DNA of 64,000 nt, from NCBI GenBank assembly GCA_964057225.1, contig OZ059894.1, positions 14,446,001-14,510,000 of the forward strand. The letters run 5' to 3'. Made by a program: the position numbers and the translations under genes. Source of the DNA: Auanema rhodensis. Taxonomy: Eukaryota > Animalia > Nematoda. Of this stretch, positions 29,440-38,769 are shown piece after piece. The first letter of the stretch is position 1, and each line of letters starts with the position of its first letter. A model generated the notes under the pieces. It saw only the letters and a program-made list of their open reading frames with translations, made no database searches and was not told the origin of the DNA.

Positions 29440-32270
29440 ATGCTAGTTCGGTTCTCAATATTAAGTAGTAGATCAATCAGTTGCTTGCAAGCTTTACGGC
29501 ATAGAGTCTTAGCATCCAGTGAATTACCTAGTATGGTCAGAAACGAGCGGAATTCAAGTTTATATATTTTTTCAAGGTTATATATATGCTCAAAAGCAAA
29601 TTAGATATTTTGCTGACAAGAAGAGAGGAAAAAGAAAATATGTAGAGTCTGTAATAGTGAAGCAAACAAAAACATCAAAACAGATTCTCGAGGTTTACAG
29701 TGATATGTCCGCCAGGTTCGTTACAAATAGTTTTGTGGCACTATGATTCAAACTTAGAGAACTTTCGGAAGCTTTAAAAGTGACACTTGATGAAGTATCT
29801 GAAGTAGTTCTTAATTGGGATGCTAGAAATTTAGATGTTTTATCTGAGAACCAACCTCTTGGACAAGATCTTATGCTTAAAGTATAAAGTTCTCTAACAA
29901 ATATCTTAACTATCCTACGTATTTTAGATAGTAGCAGCATATAACTTTAAACCAAAGTTAATAAATAGAAAAGTTCAGAAGTTTGGCGAAACCGATGATC
30001 TCGTGCCTCAGTATGTTTTTAAGAAAATATTTGCCTCAAAAAAGGCCTATAATTCAGACAACCAGCTTCTGATGCTGAATGTATTAGAAGGCCACCAATA
30101 GTAGCTATTATGGGTCATGTAGATCATGGGAAAACTACGTTATTAGATGCTTTAAGAAATTCAAAAATAGTTGAGGGTGAATTTGGAGGAATTACTCAGC
30201 ATATTGGTGCTTTTTCTGGTGAGTCGATGTTTGTTTTCCAACCTTACTGTTACATTTCTCAGTTGAACTTGAAAGTTCTCGACGCAAGGTTACATTCTTG
30301 GACACGCCTGGACATGCCGCATTTGCTGCTATGAGAGCTCGAGGAGCACAAGGTGCAGACGTTGTTGTTTTAGTTGTTGCAGCAGACGACGGTGTCAAAG
30401 ATCAAACTATTCAGTCCATAAAGTGAGTTGATGTTTTTTTTTGTGAAAAAAAGTTATACTTCAGATTTGCGCAATCCAGTGGAGTACCTATTGTAGTTGC
30501 TTTAAATAAATGTGATAAGCCCACTGCTGACCCTGTAGGACTTGTCTTTTTTATTTTTTACTGTTTAAATCCTTCAGATGAAAGCTAAACGATCATTGCT
30601 TGAACATGGAATTGTTGTGGAAGATCTTGGAGGAGACGTTCAATGTATTGAAGTTTCAGCCTTACATGGAAAAAACCTTAAAGCATTACAGGTACGCAGA
30701 CTTTATATTTTTTAAAATTATCTATGTCTTCTATAGGAAGCTTTAGTTTTACAAGCAGATATAATGGATTTGAAAGCACCTAATAAAGGGTTTGCTGAAG
30801 GTGTCGTTATTGAAGCCACAGTAGTTCATGGTTGAGTATTACGTATTTAAAGTAAATTTTTAGCAATTATTTAGGAATTGGTAAGATTTGTACTATCGTT
30901 GTAACGAGAGGAACTCTTAAGAAGAATTCTATACTGGTTGCTGGGAATTCGTGGTGTAGGATTCGAACTATAACTGATGAACACGGAAGAACTATTGCTA
31001 GTGCACTACCAAGCACTCCTGTCAGAGTAAGATAATAAATTAGATTTGATTTCAAATCTAAAAATTTCAGGTTTCAGGATGGAAAGAAGATTTGCCATCT
31101 CCTGGAGACTTCGTTCTCGAAGCTCCTAATGTCGATAAAGCTCAAAAAGCAGTAAGCTATCGTTTAAAGCTTGAAATGGAGAAGAAAGCAGAGAACGATT
31201 GGGTATTTTATTTATTTTGACTTCTGATTATAAATATGAGTTGTTCTCAGGATGCCATTGAAGAAAAACGAGCTGAGGAACGAGAGAAGTATTTGCATAA
31301 TCGGCAACAACTTCTTAACAGAGGAATGAGATTTGGTTCTACCTTACGGAGAATTGTTCATAAACAAAATAGACTTGAAAAAGAAGTTGATGATGGATCT
31401 CCTCGTCTTAATCTTGTGGTATAGATTTTTCAATAACGATTGTAAATTCCCGTTTATAGATTAGGACAGATGTTGACGGTACATTAGAAGCCATAATGGA
31501 TATCATAAATTCATACGAAAGCAAAGAATGTCGATTTGATATCGTGGATTTTGGTGTCGGTCCACCTACAGAAAAAGATATTGAGATAGCAAAAGAAACC
31601 AATGGTTTGTTTATTTAATATCAATTAATCACTTTAATATCATATGTCCTTTTAAGCTTTAATTTATTTATTCAATGTTCAACCTTCAAGTAATATTAAA
31701 TCATCTGCTGATTCGAATTCTATAAGAATTGAACATTTTAATGTAATTTATCGGCTTGTTGAAGCTTTGAAAAATGAACTTTCATCAAAGTTACCAACGA
31801 AAACTGAGCTGGAGTTGGTAGGGGAAGGCCATGTTCTCAAGGTAAGTGATCTAGTTTGTTTATATACTGCATTATGGTATCTTAGGAATTCCTGATTTCT
31901 GATCGTGGTAGAAAGAAACAACCTATTGCTGGATGCTTAGTTGATTGGGGAAATTTTCAAAAGTAGTACTTTAAAATCATTAGAAATTTTGAGCTTTTCT
32001 TCAGAAATTGTGTTTACAAGTTCATTCGAGGATCAACTGTCGTCTTCGAAGGAGCAATCGAATCAATGAAATGTGAATTAGAAGTTGTTAGTCAGGCGAA
32101 AACAAATACAGAAGTTAGAACCTAATGTTTTACAAAAGTTATAAGATTTTATTCAGGTTGGCATTGCTCTTGAGAATAAAAGTATCCGTTTTAAAGAAGA
32201 TGATAAAATAGAAGTTTATAAAGAGAATGAAGTTAAACAAGAAATTGATTGGAATCCACCAGGATTTTAA
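29440..32270 (+). CDS. MTIF2: Mitochondrial translation initiation factor IF-2
   Basis: [46 protein letters not shown]; basic N-terminal presequence; ends IDWNPPGF*. Confidence 0.95.
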
Positions 32271-32477
32271 AATATTCTTTATTCGGGTAGTGTGTACATA
32301 TGATAGATTTAGGAAATTCAAACGATTTTTTGAATAAATTATAATAAATATGGATTTTACGAAACATTTGAATGGGTTGATCCTTTGCATATCATATTTC
32401 CAAAATTTCATGTTTTTATAATCTTATCTATTGTTATATATAGATAAGTGATCTCAATCCGATTCTAATTGGATGTA

Positions 32478-35400
32478 ATGGATATATGTAATGAAAATTT
32501 TACACCTACTACCAGTTCAATTAGTAGGCTGGATTCCTTAATATTTGGGTATTTGAGTAGGCAACAGGTAGTTTCATATGGTATTAGCCACAGTTTTTTA
32601 TGAAGTTTTATAACAGTATACCAAAACAGTCTCAGCTTTGCTGGAAGAATCTCCTGTTTTGAAAGAGAATGGCGGACGATTTGGAGGTGGACGAGGCGTA
32701 TTCGTTCAAATCAACCCTACAGTCTGTGATAAAAATTTAGAATATATAGTTGAGGTATAAACTCTTTATATTAGTCAGAAACTGCTTTTTTGCTGTAGAC
32801 GTTTGCTCAATATGGAAGATTTGATGTTCCACCTGAGTTTATTGACTTCGGTCATCAATTACGTTGTTTAGCTAATGATTTCTCGAGAATGACGACAGTT
32901 TTTGGAAATGCGAGAAGGTAATCTGATTATAATTATCTAATATAATCTAATATTTATAGCGAAAATCACCGAAAAATGTACGGTTCTCGTGCCAAAAGCC
33001 GTGCCCAACATACAAAGGTTATGAGAGATAGGTGTGTTGTAAATTGAGTAGAGTATAATAAATTTTTAACTTTAGTAGTAATTATACCCAGCCAAATCCA
33101 GTTAACGCAGCCGTTTTTCACATTCCACATCATCCCCTAACAGTTGACAGTCCTACTCCTCCACAGGTATAAATCTTTTGTATAAATGATATACAAATTA
33201 CTTCAAGAATCCTATTTATACCGGTGCACAAACTCAAATTGGTAATAGTGTAGATAATCAGCTCAATTATCAAAATCAAAATCATAATGTATGTTGCATG
33301 TTTCGACCGAACAAATTTACAACCTTCTAGGTTATAATAAGTAAAGATCAGGAATCTAAAGATAAATCTACGCTTTTATCAAGCGCAGCTTGCAATATAC
33401 CATCTTTTGGTGAAATTGATAACAATTTAAATATTTCGGGATCCAATAATTTGTAAGTTGAATATTATTTCTTTTCATCTTACGAAATATTCTTCAGGGA
33501 TCCTCCTATGGATACACATAATGAGGACAACGATAATCATATGCATTCCATACTCTCTGATGAAGGTAAGCTTATTTCATTTTTATGTTTGGAATTTTGG
33601 TTTAATTCAATTTCGCCACTTGATATGAACCGGTTGCATATATTAATATCTCTTACTTTTAACAGATTTAATGTTTCCATTTTCAGGATCCTCGAGGCGT
33701 AAGAGACATCAGCCTCATAGTTTCTCGGAGCGATTTATATCCAAGTTAGCAGACGCTGCCAGTCGCACAAAACAATGTAAAGAGCAACATAGTACCACTA
33801 CAGTAATAACATACTTAATAGTCATAATGTTGACCTTCATTATAGGATTTATCAACCCTAGATATTGGAGATGAAATTTTTGACTTTTGCGATATTAGAA
33901 ACCTCCCATCACAGCTAGAAGAGGTTGTCTGTCGATTCGATCCCGAGGATAGGTTTTTTGATTACGCAGGTTACATCGACATCGATGAAAACAGCCAAGC
34001 TCCTTTTGAATCAACTTCGTTTTCTGATACAGCAATGGTTAATTTTTCTTTTATTTAGGTATTTTGGTTTTTTATTTAGGTTGAACACGTCAGAGAGCCA
34101 TCTCCTGTTAAACAAACTATTCTTCCGTCGATTCCACCAAGGAAAGACACACCATTTGGACTTGATAACGTTAATCTGTCACTTATGCCTCAATCTACTC
34201 TGAGCTCAGAGAAGAATCCTGTGTAACATTAAAATATTAATTCAAAAAATTTTGAAATTTTTTAGATATAATCCTCGTCCTTATACAATGAAAGGCCCTC
34301 GTGGACCAACTAAGATTCAATCGGTAGTTTTAATTTTATGGCAAAGAAATTTATTTATGAACTTAAGAAATCTTTAATTGAAAGAACTGGCATTAAAGAA
34401 GCAAAAGTTTTCGAAGCGAAAAATATTCCATTACGTAACGAAAAGTAAGTTCATCAGTGCTTAAGAACTATTAAACTTTTGTTTAGAATTACCATGGATT
34501 CTCTGTTTGATGATTGTGACAGCAGTTCGTCTGATGGGCCCGAAGTTCGTGATAATCATAAACGCAGTAAATCTCCTGAAAAATCGAAAAAAGAGGGCCA
34601 TAGGGATGAATATCGTAATAAAAATAAGTGGGTTGAACTACTAGCACAATTATTAATACGTGTATTCGTTTTAAGAGAATCGCACGTAAAAGAGAAAAGG
34701 CCGGAGAAATCGAATGGCCACAGAGATAGGAAAGAGGAACGAGAACTTGATAGAAAAAGACACGATAAAGAGGAGAAAATCAGATCAGAGGTAAGTAATC
34801 AGATATTTATTTCCTTAATATATATGTTTTTAAGGATAAACATAAATCCGTTCGGACAGAAAAATCGGACAGAGTTGAAGACAAGAAAAAACATGAACGT
34901 TATCGTGATGATACTGAGAAGAGGGAGCACGAACGCAAAAAGAAGGAAATGGTTATTCGTGCTAGCAGAGAATATGAACAAGTATATCATTTATGGTGGT
35001 TTAGCTTATATATTATACTCTATAGCAACGGCGGGACGACGCTATGAAGAAAAGAGAAGAAGATCGCAAACGATATCATGAAGAAAGAAAGAAAAATGTA
35101 ATGCCCACCAAAGACGAAGAAAGAAAACCCCGAGAAGAAGTTGACGGTGCTGTTAAAGACGAAGATAGAAGATCTCGTGATAAGAGAAAACACTTAGATG
35201 ATGATACTTCTTCTGCCGAGGTTGATCGAAATGAAAGAGAGGCAAGTCAAGACAGTTTAATGAGCTCAAGCTATTGCTATTCGTTTGATCCAAATGCAAA
35301 AAAAAATAGAAACTCCAAAGAAAATGAAAAAGTTTCGAATTCTTTTAAAAGCAAGGTATCAAGGATACACATCTGAAATTGAAAAACATTTTTAGTTGTG

Positions 35401-36492
35401 GGACAATAAGACAAAAGATGAGTCTACTAAGAAGAAACGTTCTAAAGATGTTAGCGGCTCTTCAAGTATGCCTGATATATTATGGGAAATCGAAAAAAGT
35501 TTCGATAGCCTGCGAAGGTAGTATAAACTGCCAATTAATCAATTATGAATGTATTTAAGAAACGAACGTTCTCCTTCTCCTGATATGTCTTTCATGAATA
35601 TGAAAAAACTGGCTCCTTCCACAAGAGTAAGTTTATAGATTTCTATCTTTTTAATTTTAGCGGTTTTTCAGATACCTAAAAAGGGATCTGATCTTACCCT
35701 AGCTGCAGCTACTTCTGTGGCACCTTCTACCATACCTTCTGCAACACCTTCTCAAGCACATTCTGCAGCACCTTCTACAACGCCTTCTGCAGCACCTTCT
35801 GCAGCACCTTCTCCTGTGCCTTTTAACTCTATCACTCTTGCTCCGGAAAGATATTCAGAGCCTGATTCTCTCCCACCTCACCAACCTGTAGTACCTCATC
35901 GTACATCGCATCCTATACATGCACAACAATTACCAACTGTACAAACTTCCGAATGTTACATTCCAACTGTTTCTGTATGTTTTAATTTCATAAGTTGTTT
36001 TTTAACTATATTTACAGGAAAATCAAAATGATCAAAATTTAACAAATTTGCTTAAATCTCCAATGGTAAGCGGCCTACCCTCAAATGAAACAAATCTACT
36101 CATAAAAAGTACAGTTAATGATGCAAGAAGTATGCGTTAATTTTAATTAATTTTCTCTATTTTTAAAATATTTTTTAGTTGGCCTACAGTTTGAGAATGC
36201 AGCATTAAAATGGAGACAAAATATTGTTAGTTGTAATATTACTTACATTTTGCATCCATCTCATTTTTAGGAATTAGAAAAGGAGTCTGAATCTCGGAAA
36301 CGGTCTTCTCAACATAATGTGACTTTAAGTCAAGTATTTAATGGAAGTAGTTCTCCAAAGGTTTCAGTTGTATAGTATGAATTGAACAATTTTAAATCAT
36401 TTCAGGATATGAATAACAAGAAGATAAAACTTGATTTATCTGTAATTAATTCTATTATGAAAAAAGTGCATGGAAATTCATCTGCAGATTGA
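32478..36492 (+). CDS. N-terminal LisH-domain, largely low-complexity nuclear protein (NPAT/Mxc-like), many exons
   Basis: SISRLDSLIFGYLSRQQYTKTVSALLEESPVLKE...CDKNLEYIVETF; long charged and Ser/Pro-rich body; ends KKIKLDLSVINSIMKKVHGNSSAD*. Confidence 0.7.
35716..35815 (+). repeat. Degenerate 12-bp coding tandem repeat (GCAGCACCTTCT; AAPS units)
   Basis: APSTIPSATPSQAHSAAPSTTPSAAPSAAPSP. Confidence 0.8.
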
Positions 36493-36793
36493 TCATATAT
36501 TTTTTCTGTTTTTTTGTTTAGATTACTTAGGAAAGCTTACTTTCCAATTTGCTGCTATATATAACCACTATTTGATTAGATGTAATCGTTATATTTTATC
36601 ATACAAATTACGTGTTTCACTTGAAGTACTAAGAACTTCCATATCATATTGTTATAGCGGTTTTCTTGTGCCTTAATGAGAGGGGTTGTGAGCATAAAGT
36701 TATATTTGCGCTTTGAAATTTCTAACAGTTACACTGGATAGCATCCTTTTTCTATTCCTAGTAGGACGATAATTCTTTAATTGTTTTTTCTAG

Positions 36794-38769
36794 ATGATTC
36801 GATCATCTTATAGTCTGCTTTCACGGATATATCATGTACAAACTTCAAAATTTTATGCTACTTTATCAGCCTCGACAATTGATGAAACGTTGGCTTCGCT
36901 GTTGAATTCATTTTAATACCAAATTGTTTCAGATTTGAAGCTCTCTTAAGAGATGTTGATCTCAAAGATCCTCTCTACATACCCTCTGCTTCTCATGAAG
37001 TTATGGTTCTCCATCCTAAAGTATTACATAATTTTACCCCGTGTTTTTAACTGTTACGATTCTAGATTCGGTGGGGATCTTCTAGTCCTTCGATTTTAAA
37101 AAATCCTTCAGATCAATTAGATGAAGCCGTTTCTCTTGTAAACACATTACCAGGGTTTCGTGTTGTACAGTTCGTAAATGAAACAGTGATCTCGATATTT
37201 TATTTATTGCAGTTCAGAGATCATTGGTGTTGATTATAACACAAAACGGAAAGCTATATGGGGTACCGGAACTATTGAAGGTCTTTTAAGAAAGAAACAA
37301 GATATTAGAGCTTCCGCTTTAATGGTTAACGTTGATATGCTCTCAGCAATGCAACAGGTAGATACACTGATTCCATATTTTTATGATAGTACGTTGAATT
37401 ATTGTTATTGTAGGTAGAGTTGGCAGATATTTTCAAAGTACCTATATATGATCGATATAATATAGTTTTATCAATATTTAAACATTATGCAAAAACAGAA
37501 GAGTCGAAATTACAAATTCAGTTAGCTGAAATTCCATATATTCGGTAACAAACTTTAATGTCAGCTAAATCTATTTTCAAATTTCATTTTATAGTCATAG
37601 GTTACATTATATGAACAAGTCTGTTGCTAAAAGCTCTGTATTACACGTCGAAGAAGTGGAGCTATTCCGAGGGTTTCGATAAACTTTAAAGTTTTTTTTT
37701 ATTTCTCTTTTTTGTAGCGTTGACCGTTTTGAAGTTTTACGTTTACGGGAACAGTCAATCAAGAAGAAGCTTAGAGATTTATCAAAAGAAGAAAATAAAG
37801 AGATTAAACGTAGTGCTTCAGATGCTGGCCTAGTTGCTATAGTAGGGTAATGGAATATTCTCATTTTTAACTATTTATTGTTATTTATAAAGATATACAA
37901 ATTGTGGTAAAACTACTCTCGTCAAAAGGTTAACGGGCTCTAATTCATTGAATCCGAAGGATAGATTATTCGCAACATTGGACACCACGAGACATAATGC
38001 TTTGTACGTTTTAAGAACAATAATACTTCAACTAACCTATTTTAAAGACTACCTTCAGGAAGGAAAGTTGCATTTGCTGATACTATTGGGTTCTTCAGTG
38101 AATTGCCTACACATCTGATATCGGCTTTTGAAGCCACACTAGCACATGTTAAAGAAGCAGTAAACACAACGCTAAAACAAAAAATCACCTTATATTTTTC
38201 ATTATAGGATGTCATTATTCATCTTAGAGATATTTCTAATGCAGCATGGGAAGCTCAATCAGAGGATGTTCTGAATACACTTTTATCGTTGGGAATTCCT
38301 GAGGAAAAGCTCATTAATATGATTACTGTAGATAATAAGGTTCATCTTATCCATATATTTGTTTTGGTTAACTTTATCTAGATTGATAGAGATGGAGCAG
38401 CTAATACTGAAGGGTCTTACCGCATATCATGCACCTCTGGTTCCGGTATCGAAGAATTGATTGATACAATTGATAAGGTAGAACAAGTAGAAAAATACAT
38501 AAGTTTTGCAAACACTTTTTTAGAGTATTATGATTGCATTGGGTTGTAAGATTCGTCGGTTAAAGTTACTGCCATCATCTCCAACAATACCTTATCTCTA
38601 CAAGTACAAATAACAAGACAAACAACTTTAAATTCTATTTTTTAGCGAAGGTTTTGTATCCAAAGAACCAAAAATAGATGGGCCGTTCTTGGTATTTGAA
38701 GTATCAATGACCGAAGCTGAAATGAGCAGGATGAAAAAACATGTTGGATCTCTAGTTCGGGCAAATTAA
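36794..38769 (+). CDS. GTPBP6: HflX-family mitochondrial GTPase
   Basis: YDRYNIVLSIFKHYAKTEESKLQIQLAE; AIVGYTNCGKTTL; LFATLDTT; DTIGFF; NKID. Confidence 0.92.

Follow-up and report, generated by a model that had tools for sequence, protein, structure and literature searches.

In a 64,000-nucleotide window of the genome of the nematode Auanema rhodensis (contig OZ059894.1, positions 14,446,001 to 14,510,000 of the forward strand; coordinates below are those of the window), the stretch 32478..36492 is occupied by a real, expressed gene of 24 exons, whose structure and spliced RNA were both observed. With a probability of about 0.6, its product of 937 amino acids (aa) is a nuclear protein with a LisH head that associates with itself and serves as a scaffold or as a transcription co-regulator, built in the manner of NPAT, Nopp140 and Treacle. 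Judged from its sequence, the protein appears to be fast-evolving, and an N-terminal helical domain of ~113 residues would be its only strongly constrained globular part. An earlier note, made from the DNA letters, had proposed a narrower identity, namely that the gene is a nematode orthologue of NPAT (human) and Mxc (Drosophila), which act at histone genes.

Structure and expression of the gene

The evidence for expression consists of transcriptome contigs from four runs (X1–X4) of one 2019 study, each ~3.05 kilobases (kb) long. Every one of these contigs maps to the locus without mismatches as 24 pieces with 23 joints. All 15 of the contig joints listed are GT..AG, and the other eight of the 23 were inferred from contig-position arithmetic, reading frame and collinearity over every boundary with P0002, an 886-aa "unnamed protein product" of Auanema sp. 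JU1783. In the resulting model on the plus strand, the coding span 32478..36492 amounts to 2814 nucleotides (nt) and 937 aa, the only stop being the terminal one. The spliced length of 32442..36600 is 2958 nt, which equals the position recorded for base 36600 in contig X3. The span 32478-36492 had previously been taken as one gene, and its two ends indeed coincide with the start and stop codons of the spliced frame.

The GC content is 28–40% around 32.4–36.6 kb, with no long open reading frame (ORF) of bacterial type. Three-frame reading gives many short open pieces separated by stretches of 41–154 nt with GT..AG ends, and the minus strand across the gene holds only short ORFs (<65 aa). Intron 17 is the longest intron, the remaining ones being 41–121 nt, and it must be GC-AG because contig arithmetic and frame put the end of exon 17 at 35241. 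An Rfam scan of 32000-37000, intron 17 included, detected no RNA family.

The contigs extend 85–110 nt beyond 36600, and a CATAAA at 36693-36698 may serve as the poly(A) signal. At the other end, the position where contigs start (32442) is the AG of an acceptor-like site, TTATATAG (32436-32443), 35 nt 5' of the ATG. The site would be in keeping with trans-splicing of the 5' end, but the contigs showed no leader sequence. The features of the gene are as follows, with the source of the joints given where recorded.

Transcribed span, 32442..36710, +: 5' end at 32442 or upstream of it; 3' end at ~36685-36710
Exon 1, 32478..32567, +: ATG, residues 1-30; first half of LisH-like motif from 32529; joint 32567/32617; 22/30 identical to P0002
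Exon 2, 32617..32754, +: residues 31-76; second half of LisH-like motif at 32617-32652, Gly-rich loop; contig joints; 40/46 identical to P0002
KNLEYIVE in exon 2, 32731-32754, +: located where NPAT/Mxc carry the LxxII (SIF) motif
Exon 3, 32799..32917, +: end of conserved helical N-terminal domain; contig joints; 34/39 identical to P0002
Exon 4, 32960..33031, +: basic linker; contig joints
Exon 5, 33076..33166, +: conserved HIPxHPLTVDSPTP island with two S/T-P sites; contig joints
Exon 6, 33208..33288, +: N/Q-rich, poorly conserved; contig joints
Exon 7, 33331..33452, +: poorly conserved; contig joints
Exon 8, 33498..33565, +: contig joints
Exon 9, 33687..33802, +: conserved basic patch SSRRKR, a candidate nuclear localisation signal; short predicted helix (P0002 270-282); contig joints; 29/38 identical
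Exon 10, 33846..34037, +: 64 aa, conserved acidic/aromatic motif including SQLEEVVCRFDPEDRF; contig piece 33846-34036; 39/62 identical
Exon 11, 34080..34222, +: S/T-P sites, one of them SPVK; contig joints
Exon 12, 34266..34323, +: RPYTMKGPR island; contig joints
Exon 13, 34368..34444, +: contig joints
Exon 14, 34487..34627, +: ITMDSLFDD island, conserved KRSKSP site, start of hyper-charged region; contig joints
Exon 15, 34676..34790, +: hyper-charged helical region, K/R/E/D 60-75%; contig joints
Exon 16, 34835..34981, +: hyper-charged helical region; contig piece 34833-34981
Exon 17, 35026..35241, +: hyper-charged helical region, GC donor at its end; contig piece 35026-35239
Intron 17, 35242-35395, +: GC-AG (GCAAGT...TTTTAG), 154 nt; joint inferred from contig positions, frame and P0002 collinearity
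Exon 18, 35396..35517, +: KKKRSKD basic patch, conserved MPDI..EIEK.FDSLR island; inferred joint
Exon 19, 35560..35626, +: conserved RSPSPD..FMN.KKLAPST island; 17/22 identical; inferred joints
Exon 20, 35672..35974, +: P/S/T/A-rich low-complexity stretch, unconserved; contig piece 35672-35974
Exon 21, 36018..36129, +: conserved NLLIKSTVNDAR island
Exon 22, 36179..36225, +: placed by frame and P0002 alignment
Exon 23, 36271..36360, +: SRKRSS basic patch, conserved SPK site
Exon 24, 36406..36492, +: KKIK lysine patch (36418-36429), amphipathic helix LDLSVINSIMKKVH (36430-36471), stop; contig piece 36404-36600; 19/25 identical to P0002

Architecture and conservation of the protein

An exhaustive phmmer search with exon 10 (64 aa) returned one true relative, P0002 (E 6e-16), which is collinear with every exon and identical at ~487 of the 937 residues (~52%). 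This protein stood in for the spliced product of the window in the domain, Atlas, fold and fragment tests. Identity between the two peaks in the head, at 83–87% over its first 113 residues and 79–87% when taken over the first three exons. Conservation in this orthologue from Auanema sp. JU1783 extends to the N-terminal domain, to a number of short islands and to the basic-plus-helix motif at the C-terminus, which lifts these features above chance.

Six other matches to exon 10 in the phmmer search were rejected as secreted S/A/V-rich repeat proteins, which match through a repeated HF.PADHR.DA.G motif. Repeat proteins P0001, P0003, P0004, P0005 and P0007 carry a recurring ...SVKTPER.S.VISHF.PADH.YDATGSV... 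unit, and their E values with exon 10 reach down to 1e-27. Such repeated weak matches show that repeats can inflate phmmer E values. A metagenome scan with the head yielded two contigs, L001 (3176-3262) and L002 (1697-1783), which were also discarded: both are bacterial (67–69% GC) and hold FAQYGRFD by chance. An exact-sequence contig look-up for P0002 gave no record.

Within the head, the Pfam LisH profile matches P0002 residues 16-40 over profile positions 3-27 of 27 (E 0.047, 14.1 bits), and the nearest neighbours of residues 1-115 in an ESM Atlas feature search are BRWD1_N/LisH clusters (0.87). Both results bear out the N-terminal LisH claimed in the earlier note, the Pfam match at a sub-threshold score, and the string quoted there is that of exons 1-3 read over introns 1 and 2. 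With the whole protein, the Atlas gave no usable match. In the P0002 head, the helices modelled by AlphaFold lie at 7-46, 65-78 and 86-103, with a predicted local distance difference test score (pLDDT) of <50. Pfam found no match on ten single exons, because the LisH is divided by intron 1. Sequence searches of the PDB with exons 1, 2 and 24, the P0002 head and a head profile brought up chance matches only (Cake designer proteins and SlpX), with no LisH among them even at E<=10.

As for the rest of the protein, its composition (S+T+P 24%, K+R 16% and D+E 16% of the 937 aa) and the low-confidence, few-helix AlphaFold model of P0002 agree with the long disordered body described earlier. Alignment with P0002 revealed the following conserved islands: HIPxHPLTVDSPTP; SSRRKR...SFSERF.SKLADAAS; the acidic/aromatic motif of exon 10; RPYTMKGPR; ITMDSLFDD...KRSKSP; KKKRSKD...MPDI..EIEK.FDSLR; RSPSPD..FMN.KKLAPST; and that of exon 21. 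At about residues 470-660 lies a hyper-charged region (~150–190 residues) in which K/R/D/E make up 60–75%, and P0002 515-664, which AlphaFold models as long helices with a pLDDT of 70–90, is the best-predicted part. The C-terminus presents, in order, the SRKRSS patch, the SPK site, the KKIK patch and the helix LDLSVINSIMKKVH. AlphaFold places the C-terminal helix at P0002 869-878, seven residues before the end of the protein; apart from the helices listed here, the remainder is coil. A terminal basic stretch followed by a helix had also been claimed, and the quoted string was found in exon 24, with the motif kept in P0002. The S/T-P sites that had been ascribed to the body are present as well, but they are not enriched over chance (14 vs. 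10.9 expected from shuffles, P-value = 0.19). Two of them fit S/T-P-x-K/R, and about six positions are common with P0002; NPAT/Mxc have several sites of this kind, at which cyclin E/CDK2 phosphorylates them. No other Pfam domain was detected in full-length P0002 at E<=1, and the last 127 residues gave nothing at E<=10.

These parts suggest how the protein might work. By analogy with other LisH domains, the head may pair or oligomerise via the LisH helices and the two helices that come next. The basic patches are probable nuclear localisation signals and would mediate nuclear import. The two halves of the protein might be held apart by the charged helix, either as a stiff spacer or as a coiled coil. 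Partner binding would fall to the conserved islands and to the C-terminal helix, which together with the lysine patch resembles a docking peptide.

Relationship to NPAT/Mxc and other LisH families

In Mxc, the LisH carries V14-Y17-L18, and the SIF region carries, ~20 residues past the LisH, an LxxII motif (L58-I61-I62, within GGLEEIICE) that is conserved in NPAT (PMC4395134). The LisH of fly and human is 51% identical, and the rest of Mxc and NPAT share merely 12–15% (PMC3166876), so weak similarity is to be expected of any nematode counterpart. An NPAT-type LisH as reciprocal best match was the argument used for Mxc (PMC3166876). At its C-terminus, NPAT contains KKKKIKKKK (1397-1405) and a helix (1412-1425); the region 1397-1427 binds FLASH/YARP, with L1420 and L1423 being essential (PMC7432317), and the nuclear localisation signal of NPAT is at 1368-1405 (PMC11613458).

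We scored fragments on P0002 with shuffled controls, using published ones and the NPAT strings quoted in the earlier note. The LisH fragment quoted there fits best at position 14, with a score of 41 vs. 12 for the next place, 10/32 ungapped identities and a frequency of 1/5000 shuffles. Here I-Y-L occupies the positions equivalent to V14-Y17-L18 of Mxc; the residues of the V-Y-L triad are common to LisH domains generally and are thus not NPAT-specific (PMC4395134). Over the first 12 residues of the LisH, fly and vertebrates are identical at 11/12 (PMC4395134), compared with ~5/12 here by hand count. An L-E-Y-I-V motif sits 24 residues past the LisH, and the NPAT string GKNLTTILNEY from the earlier note aligned with DKNLEYIVETF has a P-value of 0.016 in the expected neighbourhood and of 0.065 over the whole protein.

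Hand counts give 10/32 LisH identities for SMU1, level with NPAT, and 6/32 for TBL1XR1, 6/32 for LIS1 and 4/32 for NOLC1. On these hand counts, the LisH resemblance to NPAT would belong to the top tier and would not be unique.

The published Mxc SIF fragment GGLEEIICE does not fit at the N-terminal position where it would be expected (P-value = 0.25). Its best match anywhere (P-value = 0.005) is SQLEEVVCR in exon 10 (33903-33929), which is the wrong location; this motif is kept in the Auanema sp. JU1783 orthologue, and the match is probably due to chance. The published NPAT C-terminal helix AGMDVDKFLLSLHYDE (PMC7432317) scored at chance level against the last 45 residues (P-value = 0.30). The best local alignment there sets VDKFLLSLH against IDAIMKKVH, a register in which hydrophobic residues face V1416, F1419, L1420 and L1423 and a His faces H1424, Y1425 being without counterpart; any amphipathic helix would give such a hydrophobic register. 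Pfam NPAT_C (PF15712), a model built from vertebrate sequences, gave nothing on the whole of P0002 at E<=1 or on its last 127 residues at E<=10. What stands of the proposed orthology is the LisH-type head, the disordered body and the lysine patch with its end helix, whereas every NPAT-specific test was negative or marginal.

A true nematode orthologue of NPAT/Mxc would be a LisH-SIF scaffold on replication-dependent histone genes and an S-phase activator, whose C-terminal helix docks a SANT/Myb partner, plausibly GON-4 (the GON4L/YARP/Mute homologue) rather than FLASH. We consider this identity possible but doubtful. The arrangement of the protein speaks for it, with a LisH within the first 45 residues, the I-Y-L triad and the L-E-x-I-V-x-E motif at their places, and a lysine patch with a short helix among the last 25 residues, as in NPAT itself. 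In addition, C. elegans retains gon-4, and a two-hybrid screen with a mouse GON4L SANT bait recovered NPAT only (PMC7449961); a GON-4 docking helix would therefore be reasonable for a nematode to keep. The defining domains SRP40_C, Treacle, SSDP, CTLH and WD40 are absent, which leaves NPAT/Mxc as the sole known family with a fitting build. Mxc was itself reportedly first proposed from LisH similarity alone. On the other side, no database tool signals NPAT, the Atlas neighbours being other LisH groups, and the chance-level scores of the C-terminal helix and the SIF fragment, the low identity in the first half of the LisH, the equal similarity of SMU1 by hand count and the unenriched S/T-P sites all argue against it. 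So does the long hyper-charged helix, for which we know of no counterpart in NPAT or Mxc. Furthermore, no paper that we found names a nematode NPAT, and according to a 2026 review, evidence for histone locus bodies is lacking in C. elegans (PMC13525598).

The protein might instead be a diverged member of another LisH family (Nopp140/DAO-5, Treacle, SSBP/SAM-10, or a truncated relative of SMU1/TBL1 type), which we regard as quite improbable. Nopp140 and Treacle start with a LisH and have a long charged disordered chain and basic C-terminal regions, which counts for a relationship of this kind, as do the SMU1 LisH, by hand count level with that of NPAT, and the generic LisH/BRWD1_N neighbours in the Atlas. 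However, SRP40_C, Treacle, SSDP, WD40 and CTLH were not found on P0002 at E<=1, nor anything on its last 127 residues at E<=10. Against Nopp140/DAO-5 stand the lack of SRP40_C (Pfam) and a composition without acidic serine clusters alternating with basic blocks, and against SSBP/SAM-10 the lack of the SSDP/LUFS domain (Pfam). SMU1, TBL1 and LIS1 have a WD40 propeller behind the LisH, along with a CTLH or F-box-like part, whereas no WD40 or CTLH match was obtained here and the full-length transcript stops at 937 aa; with both start and stop codon present in this transcript, a lost WD40 part is not an explanation. It is likewise unlikely that the LisH resemblance is spurious and that the gene encodes a charged nuclear protein restricted to Auanema or close rhabditids, such as an accessory factor of RNA processing whose helix is rich in Arg, Glu and Lys. 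The sub-threshold Pfam match, the lack of any PDB LisH at E<=10, the single congener among the relatives found and the charged helix being the best-predicted part would all fit such a protein, but the Pfam match spans the whole profile exactly where a LisH should lie, LisH-type N-terminal domains also came up in an independent embedding search, and conservation is highest in the head.

Several observations weigh against the LisH-headed scaffold that we favour. The LisH match scores 14.1 bits, below the Pfam cut-off of 21.6 bits, and the Atlas scores fall within the "lead only" range. The mean pLDDT of AlphaFold is 38 for the head (with a 4-row alignment) and 44 for the whole of P0002, and the fold of the head is thus not established. 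No relative was found outside Auanema, a genus that belongs to the Rhabditidae and shares its suborder with Caenorhabditis, either by exhaustive phmmer, which was run with exon 10 only, or by word-index searches; the latter, made with the whole of P0002 and with the head against candidates of 487-1550 aa and 154-490 aa, returned P0002 alone. Two sequences do not allow constraint to be told cleanly from recent common descent.

Genomic context, significance and known systems

The gene lies between two genes with GTPase signatures. Upstream, Pfam detects GTP_EFTU (E 2.2e-5, 30110-30214), a translational-GTPase signature, and downstream GTP-bdg_M (E 0.0034, 37420-37548), a signature of HflX/GTPBP6 type; both are consistent with the labels mtIF2 and GTPBP6 that the neighbours had been given. 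The HflX/GTPBP6-like gene has its ATG at 36794, directly after an acceptor-like site, TTTTTTCTAG, and ~85 nt separate this ATG from the 3' end of the transcript. Such spacing is typical of rhabditid operons and suggests that the two genes are co-transcribed, the downstream one being trans-spliced.

A nematode counterpart of NPAT/Mxc was not found in the papers searched, in line with the earlier statement that none is known, and histone locus bodies are not reported from C. elegans (PMC13525598). The identity of the gene therefore bears on how worms switch on histone transcription in S phase. Tentatively, the gene could be the missing nematode NPAT/Mxc: a scaffold kept despite the reported lack of U7 small nuclear ribonucleoprotein processing and of histone locus bodies, with a helix docking GON-4 instead of FLASH, and perhaps organising a body at the histone array. 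If it is a true counterpart, the transcription-scaffold role of NPAT would be separable from U7-dependent 3' processing, and GON-4, which has long been known to regulate the cell cycle in the worm gonad, would gain a molecular partner. If it is merely a lineage-restricted, LisH-headed disordered protein, it would be an ordinary fast-evolving nuclear protein.

Among known systems, generic LisH (Pfam PF08513) and BRWD1_N-type heads resemble the protein in the match along the whole 27-position profile and are its nearest language-model neighbours; they differ in that the score here is under the curated cut-off and no CTLH or WD40 part follows downstream. The same two domains set it apart from SMU1, a LisH-CTLH-WD40 splicing factor whose LisH is by hand count as similar as that of NPAT (10/32). 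Nopp140 (NOLC1; DAO-5 in C. elegans) and Treacle (TCOF1) share with it the LisH head, the long charged disordered chain, the basic C-terminal patches and the build of a nuclear-body scaffold, whereas SRP40_C, the Treacle domain and the alternating acidic-serine/basic repeats are absent here.

Compared with NPAT and Mxc, the protein is shorter (937 aa vs. 1427 and 1837 aa), has a hyper-charged helix of ~150–190 residues and S/T-P sites without enrichment, shows ~5/12 identities in a LisH half that is near-invariant from fly to human, lacks an equivalent of Y1425 and matches no published fragment significantly apart from the generic LisH. On the other hand, it has in common with both a LisH at the N-terminal extreme with a hydrophobic-Y-L triad, a possible counterpart of their L-x-x-I-[IV] motif downstream at equal spacing, a very long disordered body with very low conservation outside the head and no further globular domain, and, right at the C-terminal extreme, a patch rich in lysine with a short amphipathic helix behind it.

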